Shown: positions 1 through 59,857, counted from the stretch's first letter. The stretch is 64,000 nt of DNA from Cyanophora paradoxa CCMP329 (GCA_004431415.1 QPMI01000166.1:62001-126000); one strand, 5' to 3'. Notes: generated from the sequence alone by a model not told the origin. A program made the numbers and translations.

Positions 1-3000
1 TCCCAAGGCGAGCTCCCCGCTCTGCGCCGGCCGCGTCAGCCTGACCCTCGCGGCACCGCAGGAAGTGCAACGCGCCCATCGACGCGGAGCCGCAGGGGTG
101 AGGGCACCGATCCGCGTCGCACTGCGCGTGCGCGCCTGACTCGGCGGCAGCTTCATCGCGGTGTTCTCCCACGCGGAGGCGCCACGGATGGTCTTCTTCG
201 GCGGCGACGTCGCAGACCGCTTCGACTTCACGTTGGAGCTGCAGGACGTCGTCGCCGGCGGCGAGCTCTCCGTCAGGCGCTCCACGGACGCCGGCGGCCC
301 CCGCGTCGGCAACTCGCTCCAGATCGCCGTCGCCGGTGCGCGGCGCCCCCGCCGGCCCCCGCGCCCTCCGACCACGCAGGCGCCCACCGCTCCGCGCAGG
401 CGTTCCGGACGAGACGTCGTCCCTGGACTGCGGCTCGTCCGTGCGCCAGCGGAACGGGATCTTCACCTGCAGTGCGCACCCGCCCCGCCTCCAGAAGCGC
501 CGTCGCCGGCGCGGGCCAACACGGCCGCGCAGCCTACTATCCGCGCTTGTGCGGCAAGTCAGTGTCGGTGGCGCTCTCGTCGCTGGTCCTGAGCCCGGAG
601 AACGGCCAGGTGACGCTGACCGCGGAGGGGGAGCTGTCGGACCCGCAGCGCGGCGTCCCCTTCATCTTCTCCCCCGGCAGCGACTCCGGGCCGGCGAGCC
701 TCTCCGTGATGGCTGGCGACGTCGAGACGCGGGCCGAGTTCACTTTCGTGGGTGCGCCCTTGCGCCGGGCCGGCCGGCCGGTTTCTGCCCGCTGAGTGGG
801 CGCGCCCTCGCGCAGCTCGCCCCGCCGCCGCGACGATCGACTGCCGCGGGATGCTGGCCGTGCCGGGCGCGCCGCTCTCCTGCTCGGTCTCCTTCTTCCA
901 GGACGAGGCCAGGACGCAGCCGGTCTACGTCGCCGCCCCGGGCGCCGACGGGCCCCTGCCAGTGGACATCATCGCGAGCGGCGGCTCGCTGGCGGCGTCG
1001 TTCCCCGACGCCTTCCGGAGCGCCAGCTTCCAGTTCACTGGCGCGGTGGAATCGGTCGGCTACTTGATCGAGGTCTACAACGACCAGGGCCAGCTGCTCG
1101 GATCCCTCCAGATCCCCCGCGGCTCGGCGCCGCCCCCGCTGTCCGCCCAGCCCAGCCCGCTCCACTTCGGCGACGTCTTCCGCGGCTTCCCCGCCGTCCG
1201 GGTACGGCCGCGCCCGGCCCCTTGACCCCGATGCGTGGCCTGAAGCCCTGCCCGCGCAGTCGCTGAACGTGACCAACACGGGCTCATCGGTCGCGACGTA
1301 CAACCTCACCATCAGCTGGGCCGTGGTCGTCCCGTACGGCGCGGTCTCCGTCGAGTTCAACCCCAAGAGCATCACCCTCGGCCCCTCCGATCAGATCGAG
1401 GTCTCCGTCGTCCTCGTCGCCTTGGAAGGCACCCCCGCTGAGCCCTTCTCGCTACTCGCGTCCGTCTACGCGATGCCCCTCGACGGGATGAGCCCGCTGT
1501 TCGTCTCCTCCATAGACGCGACCCTGCGGCAGGCTGTGTCTCTGCGGGACCCGCGCGCCATCGAGACGGCCATCTTCCGTCCCGTCGCCCTCACCGCCCA
1601 GATCGGTCGCCTGCACAACGAGCTGCCGAACCCCCTCGAGCTCGACGTCGCCGGCCTGCCTCCGGGCGTCAGCGTGAACCCGCCGCCGCCGGCGACCCTC
1701 GCAGCCGGCGCCTCCTGGGACGTCAACATCACTTTCGACTCGTCGGCGATGCTCCAGGCAGGCCGCCCTGACAGCAAGCCCCTCGTCTACGTGCGCGGCT
1801 ACCAGGGCGACCCTCGCCGTGTCCTCTTCTTGTTCAATGTCTCGTCCATCAACGTCGAGCCGCGCACGCCCGCCGTGGAGCCGACGTACAACGACCTGCG
1901 CTTCATCTTCTCTAACGTGAATGCGACCAGCAAGATCTTCAACATTCGTGGCAACTTCCCCGCGTTCCCTCCAGTGGATCCCTCAAGCCAGCCGCTTGCC
2001 TTCTGGGCTCGCGATGTGCCACCCGGGATCAGCTTCAAGCCAGCTTCGGGCGATTTGCACCCCGGAGCTCCGCAGCCGCTGAATGTAACCATCGATCACA
2101 CGCACTTCAGCGCCAAAAGGGCGTACGAGATCCCCGTTAGCTTCGACGTCGGCGTCAAGAACCGCCCAACGTTCAATACTACGGTGGTGCTGCGCTTCGA
2201 GATGCGCGATCCTGACCAGATCCCGACGGACTGGTGGAAGCCGTGGGAGGGCGCGTCCCGACTGACGGCGGCGGACGCGGACGAGACGTCGGTCGTCTCG
2301 TGCGACAAGGCCGATGCGCTGCAGGCGGACAACGTGCACTGCGAGTTCCGGCCGCGATCGTGCGGGACGCCGTTCGCGGCGGAGGCGGCGGGCTTCGTGG
2401 TGGAGATCACGGACGGGAAGATGACGCGGCAGGTGTTCTTCACGGGCGACGTGCAGGAGGTGTTCGGCTTCTCGTTCGGCGCCGACGCGTTCAGCGGGGC
2501 GGTGGGCGTGCGGGTGCGGCACTCGACGGACGGCAGGCCTGTGGCGCGGACGGAGGTGTTCGTGTCCGGTGCGTGGATGGATGTAGGGTGCTTCGTTCAC
2601 GCAGTCGTTCTGAATTGGGGCTGCAGGGACGCCCGACGAGACGTCAGTTCTTGTGTGCCCCTCTGATTCGGTGCGGGTCGGAGAGAGCATGTCGTGCAGT
2701 GCGCTTCGCCCCACCCTTGCGAATGGCCCCGGACTGAGATGGCCGCGCAGCGCTTTCGACGCGCTCTTGCGGGCGCCCAGTTCCTAGCTCGGTGGACGCT
2801 CTGGTGGCTTTTTCCCTCGGAGGCTCAGCGATCGTATCGGCGAAGGCAGTCCCCTCACGCGACAGCTTTGATATCACCTTCGTGGCGGGCATGAAGAGCG
2901 TGCTGGGGAGCGTGGAGATCTTCGTGAACGATGTCCCTGTTGCCACGGCGAACATCGCTGTCCTCGGTCCGCGCTTCTTCAGTCGCGATTGTGGCAGCGC

Positions 3001-6000
3001 TCTGACTCCTCGCCGCGCGCAGACACTCCCGACGCGACATCGAATATCACCTGCGAACGAACGACTGTGCTGACGTATGGCAGCGTCACTTGTTCGGTGG
3101 AGCTACGGCGCGCCGGGGAGCCGGCGTTCGTCGCGGCCGGCTCGTGCAGCGTGGAGTGGCTGGCGGCAGTGTGAGCATGAGCACGCCGGCGGTGTGGTCG
3201 CACGGAGACGTGGTCCTCTTTGCGGGCGGCATGGAGCACGTCAGCCGGGCGGCTGTTATGTGCGACGGGGTCCAGAACGAGGTCGTTTTTGTTGACATCG
3301 GTGTCGTGAAGCCGGTGCCGATCATCACTCTTCCGGACGTCCCCGCGGAGGGATTGGTGTTCGATGCGTTCCGAGGCATCGCCATGGACCGGGTGCGTTC
3401 GATTGGCGGGCAGAGCGGATGGCCGCTGCTGAGCGGCGCGTTTGCTGCAGATGGTCACGATTAGAAACGATGGTCTTTCCGCCGTAAACTTCACCCTGGA
3501 CCTGACCAGCCTGACAGCGTTCGCGGACGGTCCGGAAGCCCCGTGGTTCACGGCGGCACCTGTGCAGGGCACCATCGCGCCGGGCGACAGCCAAGCCGTG
3601 CGAACGGATGTCTTTCTCATGGAAAGAGGTCAAACTGACGAATTGCCTCGTGCAGATCAAACTGACACTCTGGACGAGAAACACTTCGCGGCCTGTGGTC
3701 GAGCGGATGACGCAGGAGCTAAGGGTTCTAATTGACATGATTAACATCCCGGGCCGAGCGCTGTATCCGGAGGGGAGCCTGCAAACGACCGTGTTGAGGC
3801 CTCTCGCCAATGTAACGGCGTCGGTACGCCCGGCAGTCGCCGTGGACGGGCCGCTTCGTGCGTTGGGTTTTCGAAACAATTTACAGTGAGCTGCGGCTGA
3901 GTGGTTGGGCGCAGCGATCAACGCGAACATCTTCCGGCCTTTGAATGCGAGCCTCACGGGGGCTAGGCTGGTCAACCACATGCCCGAGAACATCACAGTC
4001 GACATCGAGGGCCTGCCGGCCTGGCTGCGCATTGTGATGCCGCCGCTCAACAAGCTCGTCCCGGGCCCGAACGACATCGTCATGGAGGTGGACAGCATGA
4101 GGCTGCCGGATGTTTGGGGTGTTGGACCGAGCAACGTCAACATCTACAAGCGGGAGGGCCGCGTGCTGTTGTCGACAGTGGCGGCCGGCCAGCTCGTGCA
4201 GGCCCAGGCGCTTGTTCCGGAGGTGACGCCACGCACCGCGAACCTGCGCTTCATCTACACCAACGTGAACGCGACGAACAAGACCCTCGCTGTGGGTGGC
4301 AACTACCCGAGCATGTGGCTCGCTCCTCCGGGAACGAAGCTCGCGTTCCGGGCTCGCCCGACCCCTGCAGGCATTCAACTGGAGCGGACGTCTGGATTGC
4401 TACCGATGGATTTGCTCGTCATGATTGACCACAAGTACTTCCAGAGCGTGGGGCAGCAGACGCGGACTCTCACCTTTGACGTGAACGTGGAGAACCAGCC
4501 TGTCGCCTACAGCTACGTGTCGACTGTGAACATCACGTTCGAGCTGCGGGAGCCGGACCAGATCCCGACGGACTGGTGGAAGCCGTGGGAGGGCGCGTCC
4601 CGACTGACGGCGGCGGACGCGGACGAGACGTCAGTCGTCTCGTGCGACAAGGCCGATGCGCTGCAGGCGGACAACGTGCACTGCGAGTTCCGGCCGCGGT
4701 CGTGCGGGACGCCGTTCGCGGCGGAGGCGGCGGGCTTCGTGGTGGAGATCACGGACGGGAAGATGACGCGGCAGGTGTTCTTCACGGGCGACGTGCAGGA
4801 GGTGTTCGGATTCTCGTTCGGCGCCGACGCGTTCAGCGGGGCGGTGGGCGTGCGGGTGCGGCACTCGACGGACGGCAGGCCTGTGGCGCGGACGGAGGTG
4901 TTCGTGTCCGGTGCGTGGATGGATGTAGGGTGCTTCGTTCACGCAGTCGTTCTGAACTGGGGCTGCAGGGACGCCCGACGAGACGTCAGTTCTTGTGTGC
5001 CCCTCTGATTCGGTGCGGGTCGGAGAGAGCATGTCGTGCAGTGCGCTTTGTCCCACCCTTGCGAATGGCCCCGGACTGAGATGGCCGCGCAGCGCTTTCG
5101 ACGCGCTCTTGCGGGCGCCCAGTTCCTAGCTCGGTGGACGCTCTGGTGGCTGACTCCCTCGGAGGCTCAGCGATCGTGTCGGCGAATGCAGTCCCCTCAC
5201 GCGACAGCTTTGATATCACCTTCGTGGCGGGCATGAAGAGCGTGCTGGGGAGCGTGGAGATCTTCGTGAACGATGTCCCTGTTGCCACGGCGAACATCGC
5301 TGTCCTCGGTCCGCGCTTCTTCAGTCGCGATTGTGGCAGCGCTCTGACTCCTCGCCGCGCGCAGACACTCCCGACGCGACATCGAATATCACCTGCGAAC
5401 GAACGACTGTGCTGACGTATGGCAGCGTCACTTGTTCGGTGGAGCTACGGCGCGCCGGGGAGCCGGCGTTCGTCGCGGCCGGCTCGTGCAGCGTGGAGTG
5501 GCTGGCGGGCAGTGTGAGCATGAGCACGCCGGCGGTGTGGTCGCACGGAGACGTGGTCCTCTTTGCGGGCGGCATGGAGCACGTCAGCCGGGCGGCTGTT
5601 ATGTGCGACGGGGTCCAGAACGAGGTCGTTTTTGTTGACATCGGTGTCGTGAAGCCGGTGCCGATCGTCACTCTTCCGGACGTCCCCGCGGAGGGATTGG
5701 TGTTCGATGCGTTCCGAGGCATCGCCATGGACCGGGTGCGTTCGATTGGCGGGCAGAGCGGATGGCCGCTGCTGAGCGGCGCGTTTGCTGCAGATGGTCA
5801 CGATCAGAAACGATGGTCTTTCCGCCGTAAACTTCACCCTGGACCTGACCAGCCTGACAGCGTTCGCGGACGGTCCGGAAGCCCCGTGGTTCACGGCGGC
5901 ACCTGTGCAGGGCACCATCGCGCCGGGCGACAGCCAAGCCGTGCGAACGGATGTCTTTCTCATGGAAAGAGGTCAAACTGACGAATTGCCTCGTGCAGAT

Positions 6001-9000
6001 CAAACTGACACTCTGGGCGATGAACACTTCGCGGCCTGTGGTCGAGCGGATGACGCAGGAGCTAAGGGTTCTAATTGACATGATTAACATCCCGGGCCGA
6101 GCGCTGTATCCGGAGGGGAGCCTGCAAACGACCGTGTTGAGGCCTCTCGCCAATGTAACGGCGTCGGTACGCCCGGCAGTCGCCGTGGACGGGCCGCTTC
6201 GTGCGTTGGGTTTTCGAAACAATTTACAGTGAGCTGCGGCTGAGTGGTTGGGCGCAGCGATCAACGCGAACATCTTCCGGCCTTTGAATGCGAGCCTCAC
6301 GGGGGCTAGGCTGGTCAACCACATGCCCGAGAACATCACAGTCGACATCGAGGGCCTGCCGGCCTGGCTGCGCATTGTGATGCCGCCGCTCAACAAGCTC
6401 GTCCCGGGCCCGAACGACATCGTCATGGAGGTGTACAGCATGAGGCTGCCGGATGTTTGGGGTGTTGGACCGAGCAATGTCAACATCTACAAGCGGGAGG
6501 GGCGCATGCTGTTGTCGACAGTGGCGGCCGGCCAGCTCGTGCAGGCCCAGGCGCTTGTTCCGGAGGTGACGCCACGCACCGCGAACCTGCGCTTCATCTA
6601 CACCAACGTGAACGCGACGAACAAGACCCTCGCTGTGGGTGGCAACTACCCGAGCATGTGGCTCGCTCCTACGGGAACGAAGCTCGCGTTCCGGGCTCGC
6701 CCGACCCCTGCAGGCATTCAACTGGAGCGGACGTCTGGATTGCTACCGATGGACTTGCTCGTCATGATTGACCACAAGTACTTCCAGAGCGTGGGGCAGC
6801 AGACGCGGACTCTCGCCTTCGACGTGAACGTGGAGAACCAGCCTGTCGCCTACAGCTACGTGTCGACTGTGAACATCACGTTCGAGCTGCGGGAGCCGGA
6901 CCAGATCCCGACGGACTGGTGGAAGCCGTGGGAGGGCGCGTCCCGACTGACGGCGGCGGACGCGGACGAGACGTCGGTCGTCTCGTGCGACAAGGCCGAT
7001 GCGCTGCAGGCGGACAACGTGCACTGCGAGTTCCGGCCGCGGTCGTGCGGGACGCCGTTCGCGGCGGAGGCGGCGGGATTCGTGGTGGAGATCACGGACG
7101 GGAAGATGACGCGGCAGGTGTTCTTCACGGGCGACGTGCAGGAGGTGTTCGGATTCTCGTTCGGCGCCGACGCGTTCAGCGGGGCGGTGGGCGTGCGGGT
7201 GCGGCACTCGACGGACGGCAGGCCTGTGGCGCGGACGGAGGTGTTCGTGTCCGGTGCGTGGATGGATGTAGGGTGCTTCGTTCACGCAGTCGTTCTGAAT
7301 TGGGGCTGCAGGGACGCCCGACGAGACGTCAGTTCTTGTGTGCCCCTCTGATTCGGTGCGGGTCGGAGAGAGCATGTCGTGCAGTGCGCTTCGCCCCACC
7401 CTTGCGAATGGCCCCGGACTGAGATGGCCGCGCAGCGCTTTCGACGCGCTCTTGCGGGCGCCCAGTTCCTAGCTCGGTGGACGCTCTGGTGGCTTTTTCC
7501 CTCGGAGGCTCAGCGATCGTGTCGGCGAATGCAGTCCCCTCACGCGACAGCTTTGATATCACCTTCGTGGCGGGCATGAAGAGCGTGCTGGGGAGCGTGG
7601 AGATCTTCGTGAACGATGTCCCTGTTGCCACGGCGAACATCGCTGTCCTCGGTCCGCGCTTCTTCAGTCGCGATTGTGGCAGCGCTCTGACTCCTCGCCG
7701 CGCGCAGACACTCCCGACGCGACATCGAATATCACCTGCGAACGAACGACTGTGCTGACGTATGGCAGCGTCACTTGTTCGGTGGAGCTACGGCGCGCCG
7801 GGGAGCCGGCGTTCGTCGCGGCCGGCTCGTGCAGCGTGGAGTGGCTGGCGGGCAGTGTGAGCATGAGCACGCCGGCGGTGTGGTCGCACGGAGACGTGGT
7901 CCTCTTTGCGGGCGGCATGGAGCACGTCAGCCGGGCGGCTGTTATGTGCGACGGGGTCCAGAACGAGGTCGTTTTTGTTGACATCGGTGTCGTGAAGCCG
8001 GTGCCGATCGTCACTCTTCCGGACGTCCCCACGGAGGGATTGGTGTTCGATGCGTTCCGAGGCATCGCCATGGACCGGGTGCGTTCGATTGGCGGGCAGA
8101 GCGGATGGCCGCTGCTGAGCGGCGCGTTTGCTGCAGATGGTCACGATCAGAAACGATGGTCTTTCCGCCGTAAACTTTACCCTGGACCTGACCAGCCTGA
8201 CAGCGTTCGCGGACGGTCCGGAAGCCCCGTGGTTCACGGCGGCACCTGTGCAGGGCACCATCGCGCCGGGCGACAGCCAAGCCGTGCGAACGGATGTCTT
8301 TCTCATGGAAAGAGGTCAAACTGACGAATTGCCTCGTGCAGATCAAACTGACACTCTGGGCGATGAACACTTCGCGGCCTGTGGTCGAGCGGATGACGCA
8401 GGAGCTAAGGGTTCTAATTGACATGATTAACATCCCGGGCCGAGCGCTGTATCCGGAGGGGAGCCTGCAAACGACCGTGTTGAGGCCTCTCGCCAATGTA
8501 ACGGCGTCGGTACGCCCGGCAGTCGCCGTGGACGGACCGCTTCGTGCGTTGGGTTTTCGAAACAATTTACAGTGAGCTGCGGCTGAGTGGTTGGGCGCAG
8601 CGATCAACGCGAACATCTTCCGGCCTTTGAATGCGAGCCTCACGGGGGCTAGGCTGGTCAACCACATGCCCGAGAACATCACAGTCGACATCGAGGGCCT
8701 GCCGGCCTGGCTGCGCATTGTGATGCCGCCGCTCAACAAGCTCGTCCCGGGCCCGAACGACATCGTCATGGAGGTGTACAGCATGAGGCTGCCGGATGTT
8801 TGGGGTGTTGGACCGAGCAATGTCAACATCTACAAGCGGGAGGGGCGCATGCTGTTGTCGACAGTGGCGGCCGGCCAGCTCGTGCAGGCCCAGGCGCTTG
8901 TTCCGGAGGTGACGCCACGCACCGCGAACCTGCGCTTCATCTACACCAACGTGAACGCGACGAACAAGACCCTCGCTGTGGGTGGCAACTACCCGAGCAT

Positions 9001-36000: not shown

Positions 36001-39000
36001 AACAGGGTCGGCAGCGGCCACGTCGGCATCTCTCTGCACGGCCTCCGGCACTGGCAGTGGTGGCGCCGGGAACAACGTGGACGCCAGCAGCACAAATCTT
36101 CTGTCGGTCAGGATTGCGGCGATTACGAGCCTGGGCGCGGTGCGTCCACTGTCCTCGTATATCGCTCGCTTTCAGCCGACGTCGGGCTGGCTGCAGAACA
36201 CTGCTGGTGGCGATGTCTTTGTTCTTTCTATCACGAACAGCGATGGCGACGAGGTGGTTTCTACCCGCAGCTCTGCCAGTGACACGGCGGGGATCTCGAA
36301 CGCCGCATACACGGTTCGCATGAAACTGCATGCATTCCCGTATTTTGCAGCTCACGCAGATCCCGCGCAGATCACGAAGTCCAGCTACAGCGAGCCAACG
36401 GGAACCTTCAACATCCGCGTTACGTTCGGCGGCGAAGCCATCTCGGGCTATCCTCGCACGATTGTTGTTAACCCGCGTCCGCTCGCGCCGGCATCGACCC
36501 TTGCCACAGCCAGCGACACAAACGCGGACTCGATCGCCACGGTCTGGGTTCAGATGCGCGACGACCTGCTGAACGCGTGCCCTCCGGACGAGACGAAGCT
36601 CCCCGCCGTCGCTTTCACCCACGACGATGGCGCCACGGCAGCGACGGCAACCTGCAGCCACACGACCAAGGGGCTGTACAACTGCACTGCCAGCCTCACC
36701 AAGTCGGGCTCGTGGAACGTCACAACCACTGTGAGCGGTACCAGGGTGGCGACTGTTGGCTCCCCCATCAACGTCGCACCCGGCGCACCTGTAGCCAGCA
36801 GCCTCAAGTCTGTCGTTTTCGGCACGAACAACGTCAATGGCGAGGCCAAGGAGTGGAAGGCGGGCAACCTGCGGCTGGTCGCTGGAACGGATGTGCCGAG
36901 CGTGCGCGCCGCCATCGATGACAGGCACGGCAACCCGGTAAAGACTGCGTCCTTGTACGCGACCTTCGGCGTTGGCGAGCACCTCATGACGTTCTCGGAT
37001 TCGCTTGGCGTGTACGCCGTCGACATGCCCGTCCCCGAAGTAACCGGCCCCTACATCTCGACCGTGTTCCTCCGCCTGGGTGGCGCCAGTTCCTTCGGTG
37101 ACGAGGCCACGACTCGCAGCTCGTTCACGGTCGTCGCCGCTACTCTCGACCTGACGAAGACGACCGTCGCATATGATTCCGCTTTCACTATTGGCGGGAC
37201 CGCGTCCACGCGGACCTTCCAGATCACCGCTGGCGAGACGAGCACCATCCGCGTGACTGCGCGCGATCGCTTCGGCAACCTGCGCGAAGGCTCGTCTCTC
37301 AGCGACGCCATCACCTCGGACGAAGGCCTCGTTCCTATTTCTATTGAGCGCGATGGCGCGGGATCTGCCGTCTACATGTAAGTTCGATTCATAGTACATT
37401 GGTATGTGTTAGGTCGCTCACGCTCTTGCGCAGCATTCGCTACCGCCGAACCATCCAGCGCGTCCTCACCGGCGGGCACTGGATCAAGGCGAACGGCGAG
37501 TACCTCATATTCGACGGCGCAGCTCCGTATCCCTTCGATCTGGCCATCGTGGCCAATGTCCCGAGCGCCGCTGGCGTGCAAGTCGTGGACAGCAATGGAA
37601 CCATCACTCAAGCTCCACTCAACGCCCAGCTTGCGAGTGCCCGTGCCGGCGACCATGTGTCCTTCGACATTCGAGTACGGCGTTTGCTGTTGCGCATCGT
37701 TACATGACCCGCTTGACACCTTCCCTGCAGATCCGGGACGCGTTCAACAACTCGCGCGCGTTGCGGGCAGGAGAGACACTCTCGGTGACCGCCGCGCCCG
37801 AGGGCACGATGCAGCCGGCGACCACCGAGGTCCTTGCCGCGTCGATCACGTCGCTGAGCACCAGCAGCTCCACAGCCCACGTGTTGAGGGCCAGCTTCCG
37901 GCCGCTGTCCTACGGGTGAGCCGAGCGCTTCACGGCTCACTGCGGCTGTGCTCACCTTCGTTCGCAGGGCGTACCGCATTTCGGCCACCGTCTCGGGCAC
38001 CCCGGCCGGTGTTCCCATCACCATCCTCGGCTCGAGTGCCCTCGCCGCTCCCATCACTGCCGGTGCGCCCCTCGGAGGGACTCTGCGCTCGTTCGTTCCT
38101 TACGTTCATCAGTGCCCGCGCCGGCGATCCTCTCCGCCATGTTCAACGAGATCGGCACGGAAATCTTTGTCGTGTTCGACAGGACCACCAACAAGCCTGT
38201 CGGCAGCACGACCGGCGCCGGCGCCGAGATGTGCAAGTTCCTCTTTTCCGCCGCGACGGTGTGCCAAGGGTGTTTGTGGTCTTCTTCTTTGGGTATTCAT
38301 CGTGCCCTGTAGGTGGCGACATTCGGGAGCAACCCCAGCTGCTTCTGGACGTCCTTCGCTCAGGTCTCTGTCATCCTCTTCGGCGACGCCACTGTCACTT
38401 TGGGGAGCACTCTCACAACGAATGCTGGCATTGATCTTCGTGTCACCGCGCTCAATTCCGAGCCGTGCGTTGCTGCTTGGTGGCGCTTTTGTTTCTCAAG
38501 TTCATGCGGAACGCACAGTGCGGGCGTTCTCACCGCCGATGTCAAGGCGCCGCTGGCGCCCGCGGCCCCGAGTGTCACGCTTGCGATCCCGTCCGTCGTG
38601 GCCCGCTGCGATGACATCAAGGTCTTTATTCACTGTTCAGTACTGTAAGCGAGTCGGTCCACTTACGTCTTGCGCAGCTGGAGGCGTCTGTGTCGGGGTC
38701 CCGGCTGACGTAGTGCGTGCATGTACCATTTTTTTCCCTTCCTCCGCGCTCTGACCGCGCTCTCTCCGTGCGACCAGCACCTGGTTGAGCGCCGATGCCT
38801 CGTTGAAGCCGTTCATGGTCTCCGGCACAGAATCCTCGTTCCAGTCGATCACCATCCCCGGCGGCAAACTCAATGCAGTGCGCGTTGCTCTTATCGCTCA
38901 TCGCTTGTCCCTCGGCCTCACTGTCGCTGCAGAGCACAAGCTATCCGTTCACGTTCATCGCGACTACGTTCCTCGGCGGCTCGACCACCAGGACCGGATC

Positions 39001-42000
39001 GGTGACCCTCGTCGCCCCTCCAACAGCTGACAATCTTAGCACTGACTCGCCCCGCCTTGTCCGCAGTTCTTCGTCGACGCGGGCTCACCGCCGCGCGTGT
39101 GGATCGAGACCGTGGCCACGGATCCGCTCAAGCGCTCCAAGGCGCTCAGCGGCAGCAAATCGGACCTCACCTTCTCCATCGCGGGCCGGGCCAGCCTCTC
39201 CGCTTGCGACACATCGACCGCCGAACTGAACTTCCAGTGGAGCAGTGCGTCTCGTAATGATTGGCATCCGTGGTGCCGCTCACGATCTCGGGCAGTTATG
39301 AACCCGACGACCTTCTCGGCAACCGCGCCCAAGGACTACACTTACACCGACGCTCTTATTTACGACGGCGTTACGCTCCAGGACTTGAACGTGACGACGT
39401 CGCAGAAGGAGCTGGTTCTTCCAATCCTAGCGCTCAAGCCAAGCAGCATCTATCGGTTCCAGCTCATGGTGGCGATCGATGTGCGTACACATGTGCGCTT
39501 TTGGTGCAGATCTGTCGTTTTGACTGTGCGCAGGTCCGCAACGCGACGGCTTTCATCGACATCACCGTCGCCCCGGGCGACGTCTCGGTCAGCCTGTCGA
39601 CGGGCGGTGCGCACCGTTGCTCGCTCGCTGTTGCCGCAAGGGCGCCGCTGACGAACTCGCCGCAGCGGCGGTGGGGTCGTCCACGTTCTCGCCCCTCGCC
39701 GTGAGCGCGACGCCCTTCTACGCGGACGACGCCTCCTCGGGCAACGGCTTCTTCGGCGACCTCACGCGGGCCGTGCCCACGTACGGCTACGAGTGGGACT
39801 GCTCGATGACGCTCGCGAGCGACGGGTCGCCCAAGAAGTGCGGCAACTACTCGGTGCGCCCCGCCGCCTTTGTCTCCCGCCTGCGCCCCGCTGATGCCGC
39901 TGCGCAGGAGGGCACCTTCCTCCAGGCGCAGTTCGTCAACCAGCCGCGATTCGACTTCCCCGCGAAGTACTTCAGCGAGCTCACCGAAGTGTCGCTGGCG
40001 GTCACGGTCACCTACCCGAACGGCCTCACGGCCGTCCAGACGTCGTCGATCTCCTTCAAGCCGCTGATCATCGTGCGTGCCGGTTGCTTGCGTGCGGCGC
40101 GGCGCGCCCCTGAGAGCCTCGCAGCCGGTCGTCTCCATCGAGCCGCTGGTCAAGGGCCCCGTGGACGAGCAGATCTACGTCTCTGCGCAGGCGAGCTACG
40201 CCGGCTACACGGACATCTGCTACCTGTGGAGCGGTCCGCCCTCCCTCCGGCTCTCCTGCGTTGGCGGGGCTGACGTGCCCGCAGTCACGGAGGACGGCGA
40301 GGCGATCTCCGACGCCGTTCTGGAGTCAATCGTCGACGGAGCGACCTCGGGCCTCAACAAGGCGACCCTCGTCTTCAAGGCCAACTCCAGCAACCGCCAG
40401 GCCGGCGACCAGTTCCTCGTCAAGGTCACCGTCTTCGCCCCGACGACGGATGCGGACGGCAACCTCACGTGCAGCGCGACTCCGAATGCTGACACGAGCA
40501 AGTGCGCTCGAATTAGAAGCAGTGCCCCGCCTGTCGCGCCCCTTACCGGCTTGCGCAGCTCTGCCACGGGCACCGTGGTCACGTTCGGCGCCCCGAAGGG
40601 CTGCAACCTCGTGGTGCATCCCACCTCGGGCGTCGAGAAGCTCACGACCTTCTCGCTCTCCGTGGAGAGCTGCTACCTCAGGGGCGACTCGAACCTCAAG
40701 TACGAGTTCATGTACATCTTCGGCACGGCGACCGAGGGCCAGGTCCCGGCCTCACTGCAGGCCGCGCGCTCCGCCACCCGCCTCAACACCAAGCTGCCCG
40801 GCGGCGCCCAGGCCGACGCTGACACCGACGTCCTCACCATCATCGCCGTCGTGCACGACAGCCTGGGCGGCAAGACCGTCGTTGGGCGTGCCAACGTCAC
40901 CGTCAGGCCGCAGTCTGTCCATGTGCGTCGCGGCGTGTTGTGTGGGTGGTGCTGCCTTCCTCTGACAGGCTTTGAACAGCTCACGGAGCGGCGCCTGGCG
41001 TACGACGCGGCGGCCTTCGCGATGCAGCTCTACAACGAGTCGGAAGTGGCCCTCGCGAAGCGCAACAAGTGAGCTCGACCGCCGAGAGCGCGGCGACGGT
41101 GACCCGGGACTGACGGCCGCGCGCAGGGACTGCCCGTCGCTCATGACCCTCCTCCAGCAGATCGGCTCCGTCCTGAACGCGGGTGCCGCCCGAGCCTGCG
41201 CCCCCTGCGTCCAACGTATTATGGGGACTCACGTCGCGCGACGCGCAGCCGACTTCGCGGAGCAGCGCATCACGGACATCCGGACGGCGGCCCTTGAGGA
41301 CTGCGAGCCGTGCAACGGCGGCAGGTGCCTCGGCCGCTCCGGCAAGTACCGCTGCGAGTGCCCCGAGACCGGCTTCGGCCCGACGTGCAGCAAGAGTGCG
41401 GCCCGCGTCTGTGCGCTTCTTCCCAGCGCTTTCTGACGGAGCTTGCACAGCCGCCGACGACACAAGGGCCGCCTACACCCTCATCGCCGGGCTGCGCGAC
41501 ATGTACCTGGCCGACGTGATGGAGTGCCTGAAGAGCAACATGCAGTGCAACAAGAACACAGCCGCGCAGGTCGCCAGCACCGCCTACGTCCTCACGCGCG
41601 TCCCGGAGTCGACCTCGAACAAGGGCCGCGCCACCCTCAAGGAGATCATGGACTTGACCGCCGCGTGCTCGGCGGCGGCGGACGGCAAGGCGGACGACAA
41701 GACGGCGGCGTCGGCGAACGCCGCCGCGCAGGCCAGCAACCTGGGCGGCTCGAGCTCCAAGAGGCGCAGCCTGCTGCAGACGGACCCCGCCGCGAAGGAG
41801 GAGGCGGACGCCTCGACGCGCCGCAAGGCCTTCGCCAACTCTCTCACGAACCTCGCCTGCTCGCGCACCGCCAACTCCATCACCCCGACGACCCTCGCCG
41901 CCAACGGCAACACCTTCTCGCTCTCGGGCGCGACGACGGCGTTCGGGCGCGAGTGCCAGCTGGACGTGAGCCCCGGCGTCTCGGTGACGGTGCCGGGCTC

Positions 42001-45000
42001 GACGGCCAAGGTCGAGATCCCGTCGGCGAGCGCGGCCGCCTTCGAGGCGGGCCAGGTATACGCCCTCCAGGTCGCCCTCTACTCCGGCTGCACGGACACC
42101 GCCTGCAACTACCCGACCGTCCTCACCACCGCGACGGCCGGGTCCGCCTCGCGGCGCGCGTGCCGCCCCTCCGCCCCTCACGGTCGCGCGCGCGCGCAGG
42201 GCGGCGAGCAAGTTCGCGAGCGAGAACGTGCGCTCGTACGTGCTGGTCGAGGCGGTGAAGACGGCGGGCGGCGCCTACTCGACCGCCGACCCGATGGGGG
42301 TCTTCCAGCCGGCCAGCGGCCTCTCCTACACCGTCACCCTCCCCGTCAACATCGACGCGGACCGCAAGTACCCGCCGGCGGGCACATGCTACCAGACCGT
42401 CGAGATGACGGACCAGCAGTGGGCCCTCGCCGGCGCCACCGCCGACGCGAGCGCCGCGACGCTCGCCTACGACGCGGCGACCGCCAAGTGGACCGCCACC
42501 TGCACCGTCACCAAGGCGAGCCGAGCTTCCGAGCTCGAAGCCTCTGCCGCGCCCGACCTGCGCCGAGCTGACCGCCGCTCCCCGCAGCTCGGCGTCACGG
42601 CCGTCAAGATCAGCAACAGGGCCCTGCCGACGGTGACGGCGATCTCGCCGGCCGGCTGCGGCAGCTCCTCAGCCTGCACGGTCACGGTCCGCCCTCGCGC
42701 CGGTGGCTTGCTCCGGCCGCCCCTCACGCCGGACAGGTTGACGGCACGAACTTCTTCGCGGTCCCGGTCACCGTTGGCGGCATGTCGTACCCCGCCGCCG
42801 GGCAGGAGTCGGCCCTCCCGCTCTCCTGCCGCTTCCGGGCGGCGAACGGCTTCACCGACTCTGTCGCGACGCGCGTGAGCGACACGCGCCTCACTTGCGC
42901 CGTCCCGGCGGGCCTCGTCAGCGGCACCTACAGCCGTGCGCCCCGCGCCCGCCGCCCGGCCCCCGCCCCCGCTAACGCGCGGCGCAGTGCACGCGACGCT
43001 GCTGGACGGCGAGTCGGCCAGCTCGCAGGAGTTCCTGCGCTACGGGCCCCCGAGCGTCGCGACCGTCGCGCCGGCCGTCGCCGGCACCGGCAAGACAGTC
43101 GTCACCGTCACCGCGACGACGTCGTTCGTCATCCCGGCCGGCGCCTCCGCGCGCTGCCGGTGGAAGAACGCCGCCAACGCCGCCTCGGTGACCGCCGTCG
43201 ACGCGACCGTCAACGCGGCCAAGACGGAGATCCAGTGCCCGACGGCGAGCGTCCCGGCGCCGGGCGTCTACACCCTCGAGTACTCGTTCGACGGCGTCGG
43301 CTTCATCGCCGCCACCGGCGCCGGCGCCGCCGCGCAGGTCTCCATGTTCGCGCACGCCACGGCGACCGTCTCGGCCGTCGCGCCGGCCGACTTCGACCCG
43401 GCCAAGGCCCAGACGCTCGCCGTCAGCCTCTCCGGCTTCGCCATGGTCGACGCCGCCGCCGCCGTCCCGCTCGCCAAGTGCCTCGTCTACTCGTCGGCGG
43501 GCGAGCTCCTGCACCGCCTGCCCGCCGCGAGCGCGACGGCGGCCTCGTTCTCGTGCGACCTGGCGGCGAACACGCTGGCGAACGCGAACGGGCAGTACAC
43601 CGTCCGCCTGGTGCTGGACGGCGTCGAGGCGAACGTCCTCGCCGGCTCCGCCGCCTTCGCCACGACCCCGGCCTCCGACCCCGGCCCCGGCCCCGGCACC
43701 CCGGGCCAGCCGACCCAGCCGCCGGCGCCGACGCAGGCCCCGCAGGCCCGGGCCAGCCGACCCCGGGCCAGCCGACCCCGGCCCCGCAGGCGCCGCAGCC
43801 GACGGAGGAGCCGCTGCCGCCCAACGTCATCGGCCTGGACCTCATCGCGGCCGCCGTCGTGCCCCGCGGCGGCCCCGTCGAGGGCGGCACCGTCGTCACC
43901 CTCTCCTCCGTCGGTCCGCCGCCCTCCCCGCCCGCCCCCGCCCGCCCGCCCGCCGCTGACGCCCGCCGCGCAGCGCTGGGGGCCCTCTCGGACGCGCAGC
44001 TCAGCGAGGTCCGCTGCAAGTTCGCCTCGAGCTCCGCCCCCGTCGCCCGCGCGAACGGCGTGGCGACGTGCACGGCGCCCAAGGCCGACGCGGCCGGCCT
44101 CGTGCGCCTGGCGCTGGAGGGCAGCGCCGCCGGCTACCGGACGACCACCGCGGCGACCTTCCTCTACTACGCGGCGCCCGCCCTCGAGCGCGTCGTGCCG
44201 CGGCGCGTGCCCGTCAACGTGCGGCACCACCTCAGGGCGGTGCCGGCCGCCGGCGGCAGCCTCCCCGTGACCGGCGACGTCGTCCGCGTGCGCGTCGACG
44301 GCGCCGACGTCGCCACCTCCGACGTCGCCGCGTCGGCCTCGGCGGTCGAGCTGCTGAGCCCCGCCGCGAGCGCCGCCAAGGCCGCCGTGCCCGTCGCCGT
44401 CGCCTTCAACGGCCGCGAGTACGTCGTCGCCAAGGAGACCATCGACTACATCGCCGCCCGCAGCTCCGGTGCGCCCCCCCCGCCCGCGCCACCTCCCCCT
44501 CCTCCGCCCCGCCCCCGCCTGACGCGCCGCCGGCAGCGTCGATCACGGTGCGGCTGACGCTCGCGAACATGACGGAGAGCGAGGAGCGGACGCTGGTGGA
44601 CAAGTGGGCGGGCGACGCGGCGACCAAGGAGCAGCTGGTGGACCTCGTCGTGGCGCTGCTCAGGGCGCAGGGCGTGAGCGTGCACCGCTCCCGCGTCCAG
44701 GTCACGCGGGTCGAGTACGGCTCGGTCAAGGTCACCTTCACGCTGCTCGACGGCGCGCCCGACGACCCGACGGGCCTCGGCGAGGCCGGCGCCCTCGCGG
44801 GGCGCGTGCAGGCCGCCTTGGCCGCCGCGCAGGCCGGCGCCCTCGCCGTGCCCCTCCGCGTCGCCGGCCAGCGCCTCGCCTACGACTCCAGCGTCGTCGC
44901 CCGCAAGAAGAGTGCGCCCCCCGCCGATCCCCGCCCCCCGCCCCCGCCCCCCTGCCCCCGCTGACCCGCCCCGCTCGCCGCAGCGGCCTTCAACATGTCG

Positions 45001-45690
45001 CTGACGCTGCCGGCGGAGGCGCTCAAGTCGCGAACCTACGCGGCGTGGGCGCAGGCGTGGACGTACGACGCCGGCGTGCACGTGCAGCTCGCGGCGTGGC
45101 TCGGCCAGGTCGCCGGCGTCGACGCCGCGCGCTTCGAGGTCCTCCGCGCCCTCGAGGGCTCCGTCCTCTTCCTCGTCAACGCCGTCGGCGCCGGCGCCGA
45201 CGCCGAGGGCGCCGAGCTGCTCGCCAAGCTCGAGGCGGCGCTGCGCGACACGAGCAAGAAGCTGCCGGGCGGCGGCCTCACGCTCGGCTCCGTCAACGGC
45301 TTCCTCGACCTCGCCAAGTTCAACGGCCTCGCGCTCCCGGCGCGCACCTCGGGGCTGGTGGAGCCCGGCTCGGTCGTCTCTCCGCCGGCCGCCTCGTCGG
45401 GCTCCTCGGGCCTCTCGGGCGGACAGGTCGCCGGCATCGCCGTCGGCGTCGTCGTCGGCGTCGCCGCCGTCATCGCGATCGCCTTCCTCCTCGTCATCCG
45501 CAGGCGGCGCTCGAGCCACGCCGCCAACATCAGCGGCGGCAGCTACAGGGGCAGCGCCCGCTCGCCCGTCGCCACCATCACCATCGGCGGCCCCGGCCCC
45601 GCCGTGCCGACCGCGTACGCGGTGGACCCGGTCACCGCCCGCCGCCAGGCCGACAACAACGACACATTCACCCAGTTCATCCTCGTGTGA
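1..45690 (+). CDS. Giant multi-exon type-I membrane glycoprotein (BACON/Ig arrays, IPT/TIG, filamin-like Ig, REJ, EGF, GAIN/GPS-like, SEA-like, single TM); 5' end lies outside the window
   Basis: Consecutive + strand ORF fragments join through short GT..CTGAC..AG introns (e.g. 98-150, 24566-24620). I saw no intergenic-like break or internal TM/stop until the TM VAGIAVGVVVGVAAVIAIAFLLVI-RRRR (about 45427-45510) and TGA at 45690. The product is beta-rich, Ser/Thr/Val-rich and has many NxS/T sequons. Not every junction was checked. Confidence 0.8.
2214..9680 (+). repeat. Tandem repeat A: period 2342-2343 bp, three full near-identical copies plus a partial fourth; each unit has 6 introns and encodes about 670 aa
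   Basis: GACCAGATCCCGACGGACTGGTGGAAG recurs at 2214, 4556, 6899 and 9242, with introns almost identical between copies. Diverged paralogous units flank the array (about 150-2210, 9680-11570, 11915-13520). Confidence 0.97.
13584..24565 (+). other. Single exon of about 11 kb in the giant gene
   Basis: Acceptor CCCGCAG ends at 13583 and donor GTTCGT starts at 24566. The frame is open throughout apart from two 1-nt homopolymer deletions (ORFs of 1300, 256 and 2175 aa). Confidence 0.85.
15193..23696 (+). repeat. Tandem repeat B: period 2097 bp (699 aa), four near-identical intronless copies plus about 117 bp
   Basis: GGGCTCCACGTGGT.GGCG.GACTGCGAACG recurs at 15193, 17290, 19385, 21482 and 23579. 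Diverged partial units lie at 13584-15192 and 23697-24565. Confidence 0.97.
24621..31400 (+). other. Array of diverged BACON-like (Ig-fold) domains in the giant gene
   Basis: Recurrent P[AS]W[LI]S[VF]xPxSGx[LV]xxxxSxx[VI]x[VI]TF motifs, e.g. PAWLSVSPASGAVAANSSTTVDVTF, PAWISFAPSSGSLTAGSSSTTSVTI and PSWASLASSSGTLAASGAASLTITLD. Confidence 0.65.
31990..32560 (+). other. Cys-rich DxCGxC / DCAGVPNG repeat region of the giant gene
   Basis: Spliced translation contains VVDACGLC, DCAGVPNGKSTYDLCGRC, CVDCRG and VLDACNVCGG. Confidence 0.7.
32620..35960 (+). other. Tandem IPT/TIG-like domains of the giant gene
   Basis: Motifs PTVTDLTP..ITLTGTNF, PTISSIRP..ITITGQNF, PSLASLSPVLGGTGAGTPITI, MTITGASF, ITITGSNL and PFISQIDPPAG..ITIYGNNF. 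Confidence 0.75.
36330..38060 (+). other. Filamin/invasin-like Ig repeats of the giant gene
   Basis: Motifs VTFGGEAISGYPRTIVVNP, VQMRDDLLN, IDDRHGNPV, VTARDRFGNL and IRDAFNN. Confidence 0.65.
38520..41068 (+). other. REJ (PKD1/receptor for egg jelly) module of the giant gene
   Basis: Motifs YPFTFIATTFLGG, LKPSSIYRFQLMV, YEWDC, PKGCNLVVHPTSGVEKLTTFSLSVESC..LKYEF and IIAVVHDSLGG resemble REJ hallmarks. Confidence 0.7.
41302..41388 (+). other. EGF-like domain of the giant gene
   Basis: CEPCNGGRCLGRSGKYRCECPETGFGPTC has six Cys with CxC..GxxC spacing. Confidence 0.8.
45427..45510 (+). other. Single transmembrane helix and stop-transfer of the giant protein
   Basis: GLSGGQ-VAGIAVGVVVGVAAVIAIAFLLVI-RRRR, followed by a tail of about 60 aa. 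Confidence 0.9.
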
Positions 45691-45920
45691 GGGGCCACGC
45701 GCCCCCCGCGCGCAGCCCGCGGCGGGGGCGCCGCGGCCCTCTGGCCCGGCGCTCCTCTGCCGCGCGGCCTACCGATGCACCGGCTTCCCTTGTAGTTTCC
45801 CCCGATAGCTAAATTTTCCCAATGTCTCTCTTCTTCTTCCCCATTCCTTCATCCCCACCACGCATGCCACGCGCTTGTAACGAATTTAATATCGGAGCAT
45901 GCAAAGACGTTGAAAGGGCC

Positions 45921-45943
45921 GGGGGGGGGGGGGGGGGGGGGGG
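45921..45943 (+). repeat. Poly-G tract downstream of the giant gene
   Basis: Run of about 23 G between convergent genes. Confidence 0.9.
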
Positions 45944-54639: not shown

Positions 54640-54712
54640 TGCTCCTGCACCAAGAGCCCGGCAGTTACCTATACCCCCAGCAACTCCTGCGTCACGCGCT
54701 CTTCCGGCAGCC

Positions 54713-59627: not shown

Positions 59628-59749
59628 CTTCGCGTCCAAGTTATTTTCACTGGAATGCTCGAATCGCGTGCTACGCTATGCTCGACCGCGGGGCGGGGCG
59701 TGTACCCCTTTGCCGAGCGTATCGACTACCCCTGACGCGCCCCTTCGGA

Positions 59750-59847: not shown

Positions 59848-59857
59848 GCGGGCGAAT

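Follow-up and report, generated by a model that had tools for sequence, protein, structure and literature searches.

Single-pass REJ receptors of the suREJ1 type combine an extracellular REJ module and an EGF module with one transmembrane segment and a short cytoplasmic tail. The modules of suREJ1 and its cloned cDNA of 5,596 bp have been described (PMC2120838). A single transmembrane segment has been reported for suREJ1 (PMC10855541), and REJ proteins are known from algae, for example Ectocarpus Esi0130_0068 (PMC4700764). The Cyanophora paradoxa protein described here shares this arrangement, but ~100 Ig/IPT domains precede its REJ module, IPT-like and SEA-like modules follow it, and REJ is recognisable in its last third only. 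It is also about nine times longer than suREJ1, which is reportedly ~1,450 residues in length. A C-type lectin domain (Lectin_C) had no Pfam match in the exons scanned, which were all but the smallest.

The polycystin-1 (PKD1) family also carries a REJ module, and a sequence-only reading of this locus had called its product polycystin-like. That likeness comes down to REJ and is not upheld. The protein has one transmembrane helix rather than eleven, with the stop codon 62 residues further on. It lacks a recognisable GAIN/GPS region and an 11-TM/PLAT/channel-like part, and searches of the giant protein for PLAT, PKD repeats and a channel-like transmembrane region found none. Although REJ is present, membership of the PKD1/PKDREJ group was therefore rejected on the single helix and the lack of a GAIN/GPS match.

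Transmembrane mucins (MUC1, MUC16) are likewise giant single-pass glycoproteins with one or more SEA modules by the membrane and a short tail. The resemblance extends to G-S-V at the hairpin of the SEA-like module, and MUC16 SEA is among the best structural matches. However, folded Ig-like domains form the stalk of the C. paradoxa protein in place of Pro/Thr/Ser-rich mucin repeats, with one P/T/Q linker of ~50 aa, and the Pfam SEA family is unmatched. Fibrocystin (PKHD1) and PKHD1L1, which occur on cilia or stereocilia, also combine IPT/TIG arrays with a single membrane pass, a very large size and a short cytoplasmic tail. The protein examined here differs from them in carrying REJ and SEA-like modules and in being about three times longer, and no G8 or PbH1 (parallel beta-helix) match was found by Pfam in the exons scanned. 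Chlamydomonas Mstax offers a further parallel: this single giant protein is membrane-anchored, runs the length of a surface filament of several hundred nm and has a polycystin-family link. Mstax consists of hydroxyproline-rich repeats, lectin domains and a PKD2-like multi-pass region, whereas Ig-like arrays and one helix characterise the present protein. Finally, long arrays of HYDIN_VesB_CFA65-like_Ig, ASH, Ig_CFAP65 and BACON_2 domains are shared with HYDIN, CFAP65 and CFAP47 and with bacterial BACON or giant Ig-repeat adhesins. The former are cytoplasmic, axonemal proteins without a transmembrane anchor, whereas a C-terminal helix is present here; the latter differ in their mode of anchoring and are not encoded by spliced eukaryotic genes.

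Gene structure and transcription

The window, a 64,000-nucleotide stretch of C. paradoxa CCMP329 DNA (GCA_004431415.1 QPMI01000166.1:62001-126000), was analysed with a gene model built by splice-aware dynamic programming and trained on the window itself. On the + strand, this model follows a single open frame across 1-45690, from base 1 to a TGA at 45688-45690. Third-codon-position GC periodicity is unbroken on the same strand from 1 to 45690 and ends at ~45,700. The raw model comprises 112 exons; of its 111 introns, all but one (110) are 46-72 nt long (median 57). The gene is put at ~108 introns, mostly of the form GTGCG...GCAG. Coding length in the window is ~13,170 codons (39.5 kb of coding sequence), with an uncertainty of ~100 aa because a few in-frame stop-free introns are indistinguishable from exon by sequence alone. 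The 5′ end is open, which places the N-terminus and the signal peptide upstream of the window. Cyanophora genes have many short introns, and curation of gene models is said to be needed (PMC6704402). The features are as follows.

1-13523, +: 5′ exons, open at the window edge (gene model and repeats)
3164, +: 1-nt deletion, G run GGG to GG relative to sister cassettes (repeat comparison)
13584-24565, +: giant exon, 10,982 nt, ~3,660 codons (model, repeats, Pfam; 3′ end within the 18.2-kb RNA contig)
17516, +: 1-nt deletion, C run CCCC to CCC, frame 1 to 3 (repeat comparison)
18287, +: 1-nt deletion, C run CCC to CC, frame 3 to 2 (repeat comparison)
24621-31093, +: ~24 short exons encoding PapD/ASH/BACON-type Ig-like domains (Pfam, translations)
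31150-32711, +: Cys-rich region with repeated D-x-C-G-x-C motifs (translations)
32761-35800, +: IPT/TIG array, at least 5 domains (Pfam TIG)
35855-38062, +: Ig-like domains of invasin/filamin/Big_1 type (Pfam matches, all under cut-off)
38113-40922, +: REJ module (Pfam recognises the last third alone, 40560-40922)
41249-41395, +: EGF-like module CEPCNGGRCLGRSGKYRCECPETGFGPTC (six-Cys pattern)
41451-42686, +: helical-then-beta region, earlier called GAIN/GPS-like, containing the GC-AG intron 42516-42587
42588-44468, +: about three IPT-like domains and a Pro/Thr/Gln-rich linker of ~50 aa (sequence pattern)
43746, +: C missing in the window and present in RNA contigs of three runs; the exon reads through with the C (RNA)
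44537-44911, +: SEA-like module 1, Y-G-S-V-K-V at the beta2-beta3 hairpin (AF2, structural matches)
44984-45330, +: SEA-like module 2, E-G-S-V-L-F (pattern)
45427-45498, +: single transmembrane helix AGIAVGVVVGVAAVIAIAFLLVI, then RRRR (hydropathy)
45499-45690, +: cytoplasmic tail of 62 aa and TGA stop at 45688-45690 (translation)
45691-45908, +: 3′ UTR (RNA contig ends, loss of periodicity)

The model was compared with public RNA contigs from three studies, in which runs X1, X4 and X8 are spliced; run X12 yields unspliced colinear contigs, which are DNA. Between 39950 and 45949, 13 of 14 predicted introns correspond to exact GT..AG joints in RNA. RNA also reveals one extra in-frame GC-AG intron, at 42516-42587, that is absent from the model. 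The predicted ‘intron’ 43635-43756 is an artefact of the C missing after 43746, as evident by the continuity of exon 42988-43913 in RNA with this extra C; RNA thus shows the break at 43746 to be an assembly error. With these corrections, the exon sum for 39950-45896 is 5,120 nt, identical to that of the X4 contig (13064..18183) across the same span.

This X4 contig, 18,183 nt long, starts at ~23,548 by exon sums, at the border of near-identical repeats. The X12 DNA contig likewise breaks there (~23,665), and the start of the X4 contig is therefore an assembly break rather than a transcription start. Because the contig reaches back to ~23.5 kb, a single transcript takes in the 11-kb giant exon together with every 3′ exon. 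The 3′ stretch is covered by one RNA contig of 18.2 kb and one of 15.2 kb, which come from two studies, and by shorter spliced contigs from the third. The 18.2-kb contig enters the giant exon; the 3′ 18 kb of the mRNA is transcribed and spliced. The locus is confirmed as one real, transcribed gene, with RNA continuity from ~23.5 kb onward. Upstream of that point the model is based on coding periodicity, on introns of the same type and on the homology of the domains. These results bear out the earlier proposal of a single gene that encodes more than 12,000 aa and has numerous short introns, for which RNA junction mapping had been suggested as a check. In the 3′ UTR, TGTAA occurs at 45876-45880, and RNA contigs stop at 45896 (X4) and 45908 (X1). 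A run of 24 G nucleotides is located at 45922-45945, just beyond the contig ends.

The gene contains two tandem arrays. A 2343-bp cassette with six introns is present five times at 2196-11841, and copies 1-3 are 98.8-99.4% identical, introns included. Within the single exon 13584-24565, a 2097-bp unit occurs four times (98.7-99.7% identical) with degenerate copies at the ends. This exon thus encodes four near-identical 699-aa units, each with about six Ig-like domains, and diverged copies on both sides; its frame is interrupted by two 1-nt homopolymer deletions. The three breaks other than 43746 are of the same kind, a homopolymer loss of one nucleotide. All four would be homopolymer errors of long-read assembly, for 43746 by direct comparison with RNA and for the others by extension. 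The Cyanophora assembly uses PacBio sequence to fill regions where Illumina reads did not map, and its GC content is 67.6% (PMC6704402).

Modules of the ectodomain

In the 5′ exons, Cys-containing modules of ~95 aa (TPDxTS..C....C / R.CG.P) alternate with HYDIN-type Ig-like domains that score 23.8-24 bits for HYDIN_VesB_CFA65-like_Ig, slightly below the 25.5 cut-off. Exon 1260-2567 weakly resembles the giant-exon unit by self-comparison (E 5e-4). Pfam matches are stronger within the giant exon (HYDIN_VesB_CFA65-like_Ig 63.4 bits, BACON_2 57, ASH 53.8, Ig_CFAP65_4th 47.1). Matches continue through 24621-31093, with Ig_CFAP65_4th at 54.2 bits, Motile_Sperm at 25.9 and, in 24966-25565, BACON_2 at 31.3. 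Self-comparison gives a domain period of ~115-120 aa, which makes the ~100 Ig-like folds anticipated by the sequence-only reading a reasonable estimate, and the Ig/BACON arrays it described are well matched by these families.

The other modules named in that reading fared unevenly. Its Cys-Ig modules and Cys repeats are visible as sequence patterns (DxCGxC and others), but these are weak, and no Pfam family matched the Cys-rich region 31150-32711. The IPT domains are supported in the upstream array, where TIG reaches 21.2, 29.6 and 27.6 bits in exons 33580-33807, 34700-34924 and 35609-35800 (cut-off 20.9) and 15.5 bits in 32761-33054. Downstream, at 42588-44468, they are recognised by pattern, with TIG at just 13 bits, and the linker is encoded near 43650-43800. 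The filamin-like Ig domains at 35855-38062 have matches that all fall under cut-off (Invasin_D3 22 bits, Filamin 18, Ig_GEX2_N 17) and are weak. The EGF-like module shows the six-Cys pattern in translation but scores weakly, at 18.1 bits for hEGF and 17.0 for EGF (cut-off 21.5).

REJ stands on firmer ground, so that both domains for which HMM support had been sought, REJ and IPT, exceed their Pfam cut-offs. The REJ profile PF02010 matches exon 40560-40922 at 39.2 bits and 40125-41066 at 41.7 bits (E 7e-11; cut-off 25), covering profile positions 303-417 of 452. The surrounding introns 40073-40124, 40234-40284, 40502-40558 and 40923-40979 are confirmed by RNA, and those upstream of 39950 come from the model. 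The module lies ~1,400 residues from the membrane.

The proposed GAIN/GPS-like identity of 41451-42686 was not sustained. A C..W..W..C pattern occurs here, downstream of REJ, and the candidate GPS strand, ~950 residues from the transmembrane helix, reads ...WTATCTVTK|LGVTAVKI, with K-L-G at the would-be cleavage position versus H-L-T/S. No GPS or GAIN match was obtained with Pfam at E up to 10, the region has no match among PDB sequences or in the ESM Atlas, and a phmmer search of 1.84 billion representatives returned no real hit. An AF2 model of the 229-aa exon has a helical N-terminal half and a pLDDT of 45, too poor to judge the fold. The segment is best explained as an unclassified alpha+beta region.

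Membrane-proximal modules and topology

SEA-like module 1 yields a single-sequence AF2 model (pLDDT 73) with beta-alpha-beta-beta-alpha-beta topology, in which the beta2-beta3 turn, linking strands 53-59 and 62-67, falls exactly at G61-S62. In VIA-align, SEA domains take ranks 1, 3, 4, 5, 8 and 10 with middling Z scores of 6.6-8.4 (TMPRSS6 8.4, MUC16 7.5/7.4, Gpr126 7.4, 2e7v 6.6). With Foldseek and the ESM Atlas, generic ferredoxin-like (GGDEF) folds rank first, and the Pfam SEA family does not match the module. SEA-like module 2 has no Pfam match and aligns weakly with module 1 (27%), with the two G-S-V motifs in register. Of the two SEA-like modules proposed earlier, one is thus backed by a fold model and the other by pattern only.

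Across the 112 exons, mean Kyte-Doolittle hydropathy over 19 residues exceeds 2.2 in the segment 45427-45498 alone, and neither a further hydrophobic anchor nor a signal-like segment emerged. With the RRRR and the 62-residue tail that follow, this agrees with the type I single-pass topology proposed earlier. N-x-S/T sequons number 158, versus 103 expected from composition. We read the protein as an ectodomain, rather than as cytoplasmic or axonemal, because of the C-terminal helix with its RRRR stop-transfer, the REJ, EGF, IPT and SEA-like modules and the sequon excess; secretion is likewise probable from domain types, sequons and topology. Gene structure, the named domain families and the single hydrophobic anchor are shown by the analysis.

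Mucin SEA domains self-cleave at the motif GSVVV, between G and S. Autoproteolysis at the beta-hairpin and force-dependent dissociation have been described for SEA (PMC10556640). By analogy with transmembrane mucins, the SEA-like modules, with G-S-V at the hairpin, may form a non-covalent, force-sensitive joint adjoining the membrane.

Alternative interpretations and proposed role

On the whole, it is likely that bases 1-45690 (+) are the 3′ part of a single nuclear gene from a high-GC alga, and that its product is a type I membrane glycoprotein with 13,170 residues or more (~1.35 MDa before glycans). The N-terminal part of its ectodomain would be a chain of ~110 beta-sandwich domains, in the order Cys-containing Ig-like, PapD/ASH/HYDIN/BACON-type Ig, IPT/TIG and invasin/filamin-like Ig. 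This chain would be followed by REJ, EGF-like, unclassified alpha+beta, IPT-like modules with a Pro-rich hinge, two SEA-like modules, the transmembrane helix and the 62-residue tail.

If the frame breaks were genuine, the gene would be decaying or truncated, its product would end near 17.5 kb, and downstream exons would be transcribed without being translated with it. The deletions at 3164, 17516 and 18287 do stand in the assembly, but RNA from three runs lacks the fourth break. Moreover, all four are losses of one nucleotide in G/C runs, typical of long-read error, and they occur where short-read polishing fails, in repeats or in very GC-rich DNA (PMC6704402). Coding periodicity and open frames persist for 28 kb beyond the breaks, and differences between repeat copies are commonest at third codon positions (9 of 18), leaving decay very unlikely. 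We consider it similarly doubtful, in fact very unlikely, that the span comprises two or more genes, with the 5′ cassette array (1-13.5 kb) separate from the giant-exon gene. RNA continuity is seen from ~23.5 kb onward only, but the modelled exon gaps do not exceed 132 nt, and a 60-nt intron is the better model for the largest; a terminator, promoter or UTRs would thus not fit between the exons. The span also lacks an in-frame stop and a second anchor or signal-like segment, the intron type is common to both sides, and the Ig domains are related.

For the function of this single-gene product, an alternative to a general adhesin or coat is a shaft or membrane anchor of a flagellar hair (mastigoneme), a possibility that we rate as unlikely. 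Cyanophora flagella bear two kinds of mastigoneme, one of them long and narrow (PMC6704402), and in Chlamydomonas the central shaft of a hair with a ~660-nm stem consists of Mstax, which has ~8,000 residues and a PKD2-like transmembrane region (bioRxiv 10.1101/2024.12.24.630281). The length estimated here (~110 domains at 3-4 nm) is within the Mstax range, and the polycystin-family REJ is present, but the sequence resembles neither the Hyp repeats of Mstax type nor Mst1. It is very unlikely that the protein is a mechanosensory receptor of the polycystin-1 type, with signalling via GPS cleavage and a partner channel. REJ is present, and C..W..W..C lies downstream, where PKD1 proteins carry GAIN/GPS; however, GPS, GAIN, PLAT, PKD-repeat and channel-like transmembrane matches are all lacking, the candidate triad is K-L-G, and REJ is far from the one transmembrane helix. 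A mechanosensor role is speculation.

As an adhesive or coat filament, the chain would extend ~0.3-0.5 micrometres beyond the membrane of the cell or the flagellum, and the near-identical 2343-bp and 2097-bp cassettes may be recent duplications that tune filament length. The gene is notable for its size and its domain mix, and it represents a variant among known giant REJ/IPT/SEA single-pass surface proteins rather than a polycystin.

A single reading frame and its transcript

The sequence-only reading placed one gene for a protein of more than 12,000 amino acids, hidden by short introns, at positions 1-45690, and this is borne out: a single frame of ~13,170 codons spans the region, with its 3′ part joined in RNA. 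The G+C content of the window ranges from 58% to 80%, and GC3 periodicity on the + strand is nearly unbroken from base 1 to ~45,700, after which it is absent for ~900 nt. Introns read by eye at 24.5-26.2 kb are 50-60 nt long and carry GTGCG-type donors, CTRAY branch sites and CAG acceptors. The gene model came from dynamic programming that combined 3-periodic Markov scores for coding sequence with terms for intron content, matrices for donors and acceptors, and a prior on length; it was trained on GC3-defined frames first and then on its own confident introns. This version, based on GC3-defined frames and short introns, superseded models that lacked splice-signal training or allowed long introns, which were rejected because they chose the wrong frame where GC is 70-76% and missed real exons.

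The model comprises 112 exons and 111 introns in one frame from 1 to 45687, closed by a TGA stop at 45688-45690; all introns except one are 46-72 nt long (110 of 111; median 57). Base 1 already lies within the open frame, and diverged copies of the cassette modules described below make up the first exons, so the N-terminus must lie upstream of the window. After curation the coding sequence measures ~39,512 nt, give or take ~100 codons, since only RNA can distinguish an intron that is in frame and stop-free from exon. Along the gene, G+C falls from 71% at the 5′ edge to 61-65% over the arrays and 58-60% between 24 and 36 kb, then climbs to 69-76% over the final 5 kb, with GC3 above 0.9. The donor consensus is constant despite this variation.

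The fraction of the words from 40000-46000 that is present in public sequencing runs is 0.69-0.76 for runs of one organism, versus 0.78-0.86 for two 2012 runs. The published Cyanophora paradoxa data comprise DNA from 2012 and RNA-seq from 2019 (PMC6704402). Four runs were aligned to 39950-45949. Contigs of one (X12) are unspliced and colinear with the window, and therefore represent DNA, whereas those of three others from three studies (X1, X4 and X8) have exact GT..AG joints and therefore represent spliced RNA. These confirm 13 of the 14 predicted introns to the base. The remaining prediction, 43635-43756, is false: RNA is unbroken through this stretch and carries one more C, after 43746, with which exon 42988-43913 is stop-free through a Pro/Thr/Gln-rich linker and in the right phase for the next exon. 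An in-frame, stop-free GC-AG intron of 72 nt (42516-42587) was missed by the model and is spliced out in all three RNA runs. With these corrections, the exons in 39950-45896 sum to 5,120 nt, equal to positions 13064-18183 of the X4 contig. Contig joints that skip 2-3 kb with sides of 21-22 nt were treated as chimeric contig ends and left out.

A TGTAA lies 16-20 nt upstream of the X4 RNA contig end at 45896, in the stretch 45876-45945, and suggests a poly(A) signal of the green-alga-like kind. A run of ~24 G follows at 45922-45945, where every contig breaks, that of DNA included.

The X4 and X1 RNA contigs are 18,183 and 15,151 nt long and, by exon sums, start at ~23,548 and ~26,860. The X12 DNA contig starts at ~23,665, at a border of near-identical repeats; since DNA breaks at the same border, the 5′ ends of the RNA contigs are assembly breaks rather than transcription starts. 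Thus, the giant exon (13584-24565) and all downstream exons form one mRNA. That the region from 1 to ~23.5 kb belongs to the same gene is indicated by the model: the intron type is the same on either side of 23.5 kb, the longest non-exon gap is 132 nt (and is better modeled as a 60-nt intron), no in-frame stop was found in the model, and self-comparison finds related domains on both sides.

Repeat arrays and frame breaks

A 2343-bp cassette occurs in five copies at 2196-11841, the first three being 98.8-99.4% identical. Mismatches number 3 in 339 intron nucleotides and 12 in 2,004 exon nucleotides. In these three youngest cassettes (2196-9223), introns are as conserved as exons (~99%), and therefore the whole exon-intron cassette was recently duplicated or homogenized. 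Copy number may differ between strains. Within one long open stretch, a 2097-bp (699-codon) unit is present in four copies that are 98.7-99.7% identical, with diverged flanking copies. Tandem Repeats Finder reported no repeats in the window because the periods exceed 500 nt.

Comparison of repeats and RNA with the window revealed four 1-nt deletions, all in G or C homopolymers, that interrupt the frame of a gene that is intact in other respects.

Frame breaks in the giant gene
3164, + strand: 1-nt deletion relative to sister repeats, GGG to GG (repeat comparison)
17516, + strand: 1-nt deletion relative to sister repeats, CCCC to CCC (repeat comparison)
18287, + strand: 1-nt deletion relative to sister repeats, CCC to CC (repeat comparison)
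43746, + strand: missing C, the same kind of break (C present in RNA)

At 43746 the window sequence is in error. The other three breaks, which the model had crossed by poor-looking 'introns', are very probably assembly errors. Many further homopolymer errors probably split gene models in the repeats and very GC-rich DNA of this assembly, which has 67.6% GC and many short introns, consists of PacBio RSII contigs whose unmapped areas are uncorrected, and has gene models described as needing manual curation (PMC6704402).

Elsewhere in the window, patches with GC3 of 0.9-1.0 on both strands of 46700-64000 point to additional genes. Raw ORFs of up to 674 aa in this part have no Pfam match, and these genes probably need spliced models too. 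Scans of the window with Rfam and for tRNAs found none. Minus-strand ORFs opposite the giant exon, such as 18212-20077 (621 aa) and 14485-15885 (466 aa), appear to be by-products of coding sequence rich in GC, similar to the 'bidirectional ORFs' discussed for Cyanophora (PMC6704402).

Domains of the predicted protein

Domain searches covered single exons, as well as genomic stretches (40125-41066 and others) whose introns are in frame and stop-free and so can be read through. For domains split by introns, REJ and the GAIN-like region above all, this reduced the power of the test.

Domain matches in the giant gene
Giant exon and 26-27.8 kb, + strand: HYDIN_VesB_CFA65-like_Ig, Pfam 63.4 bits
Giant exon and 26-27.8 kb, and 24966-25565, + strand: BACON_2, Pfam 57.0 bits, and 31.3 bits at 24966-25565
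Giant exon and 26-27.8 kb, + strand: ASH, Pfam 53.8 bits
Giant exon and 26-27.8 kb, + strand: Ig_CFAP65_4th, Pfam 54.2 bits
Giant exon and 26-27.8 kb, + strand: Motile_Sperm, Pfam, at cut-off
33.6-35.8 kb (three exons), + strand: IPT/TIG, Pfam 21.2-29.6 bits (cut-off 20.9)
36.4-37.4 kb, + strand: Invasin_D3, Filamin and GEX2-Ig, sub-threshold matches only
40560-40922 and 40125-41066, + strand: REJ, Pfam 39.2 and 41.7 bits (cut-off 25; profile positions 303-417 of 452)
41251-41394, + strand: EGF, sub-threshold, six-Cys pattern plain

The proposed Ig/BACON arrays, REJ and IPT modules are thus upheld by matches above cut-off. Self-comparison of the 699-aa unit gives a domain period of ~115-120 aa, which makes the proposed figure of about 100 Ig-like folds a fair estimate, and exons at 1.3 and 26 kb show weak similarity to the unit. 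Other parts of the proposed domain order fared less well: the Cys-containing modules of the cassette array and the DxCGxC repeats (31.1-32.7 kb) matched no Pfam family, and the filamin-like Ig and EGF domains stay sub-threshold, the latter with its cysteine pattern in favor.

A GAIN/GPS-like domain at 41451-42686 is not supported. Exons 41453-42139 and 42201-42686 had no match in Pfam (E up to 10), PDB sequences or named Atlas clusters, Atlas returning only pilin-like look-alikes that are probably due to chance. The single-sequence AF2 model of exon 41453-42139 has a pLDDT of 45 and is helical in its first half. The region passes from a helical to a beta part that ends C-x10-W...W-x3-C-T-V-T-K / L-G-V-T-A-V, a pattern we took to resemble a GPS strand; the candidate site is K-L-G, against H-L-T/S in cleavable GPS, and the GC-AG intron lies exactly there. 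Its retention would add 24 residues at the K-L/G position.

As proposed, the protein ends in one membrane span and a short tail. Across all exons, mean hydropathy rises above 2.2 over just one 19-residue segment (AGIAVGVVVGVAAVIAIAFLLVI, 45427-45498), which is followed by RRRR and 62 residues to the stop. Sequons number 158 versus 103 expected, a 1.5-fold excess.

Two SEA-like modules had been proposed next to the membrane, and a fold model supports the first as SEA-like. The AF2 model of the penultimate exon (44539-44910), made without an alignment, is beta-alpha-beta-beta-alpha-beta with a pLDDT of 73. Exhaustive structural comparison places among its top rows TMPRSS6 (Z 8.4; residues 87-209, which we take to be its SEA domain), MUC16 SEA (7.5 and 7.4), Gpr126 (7.4; residues 403-507, presumably its SEA domain), a protease SEA (6.6) and dystroglycan (6.6). 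Foldseek against PDB and an Atlas shape search returned only generic ferredoxin-like (GGDEF) matches, and Pfam SEA matched neither module. In the MUC1 SEA domain the cleavage motif is G/SVVV; module 1 has Y-G-S-V-K-V, with G61-S62 at the modeled beta2-beta3 turn where SEA domains self-cleave. The second module, in the last exon, has E-G-S-V-L-F and aligns weakly with the first, in register. SEA domains cleaved at this hairpin remain non-covalently associated and separate under force (PMC10556640).

A candidate giant surface tether

The protein is not a PKD1-family member, and its proposed polycystin likeness is limited to REJ: it has one TM helix, and PLAT, PKD repeats and GPS were not found. 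Its features place it in the broader group of single-pass REJ receptors, suREJ1 likewise having one TM (PMC10855541). It shares IPT arrays with fibrocystin, and with transmembrane mucins a SEA-TM-tail end that is SEA-like here. We know of no precedent for this domain combination and size.

The 229-aa exon 41453-42139 gave one spurious Ala-rich match by phmmer against 1.84 billion representative proteins. Homologue searches with a 2,080-aa giant-exon piece (18326-24565), the last exon and the REJ stretch returned nothing, a blank that says little because only similar-length proteins are visible to them. The absence of the 229-aa exon, the 2,080-aa piece and the last exon from large protein collections means that the protein may be missing from, or fragmented in, public annotations.

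The product is most likely a type I surface glycoprotein of ~1.35 MDa. Its ~110 beta-sandwich domains could extend 0.3-0.5 micrometres out from the membrane. The near-identical cassettes would reflect recent duplication or homogenization as in length-variable adhesins, and the membrane-proximal SEA-like pair could act as a joint that is held non-covalently and responds to force, like that of transmembrane mucins. By analogy with suREJ1, the REJ module may bind glycans. A specific version of the surface-protein reading, possible though of low probability, is a role in flagellar hairs: Cyanophora has two kinds of these (PMC6704402), and in Chlamydomonas the shaft of the hair contains Mstax, a giant protein anchored in the membrane (bioRxiv 10.1101/2024.12.24.630281). 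Somewhat less likely still, the protein may belong to a glaucophyte's own lineage-specific set of half-micrometre single-pass REJ proteins that form or anchor filaments of the surface or flagella, with tandem SEA-like modules beside the membrane that would self-cleave and serve as force sensor or mechanical fuse.

Provided the model is right, this is among the largest membrane-anchored proteins described, with at least 13,170 residues and an mRNA of ~40 kb. In this assembly, homopolymer errors and introns of 50-70 nt conceal giant genes that public RNA contigs can recover. In a model glaucophyte whose surface or flagellar filaments are unidentified, the protein is a concrete candidate for them, and its unusual natural mix of REJ, IPT, ASH-type Ig and SEA-like modules makes SEA self-cleavage testable outside animals. 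Should the lineage-specific tether reading be true, the REJ and SEA 'mechanical ectodomain' toolkit, otherwise known from animal polycystins and mucins, would already be present in the giant tethers of an early-branching alga.
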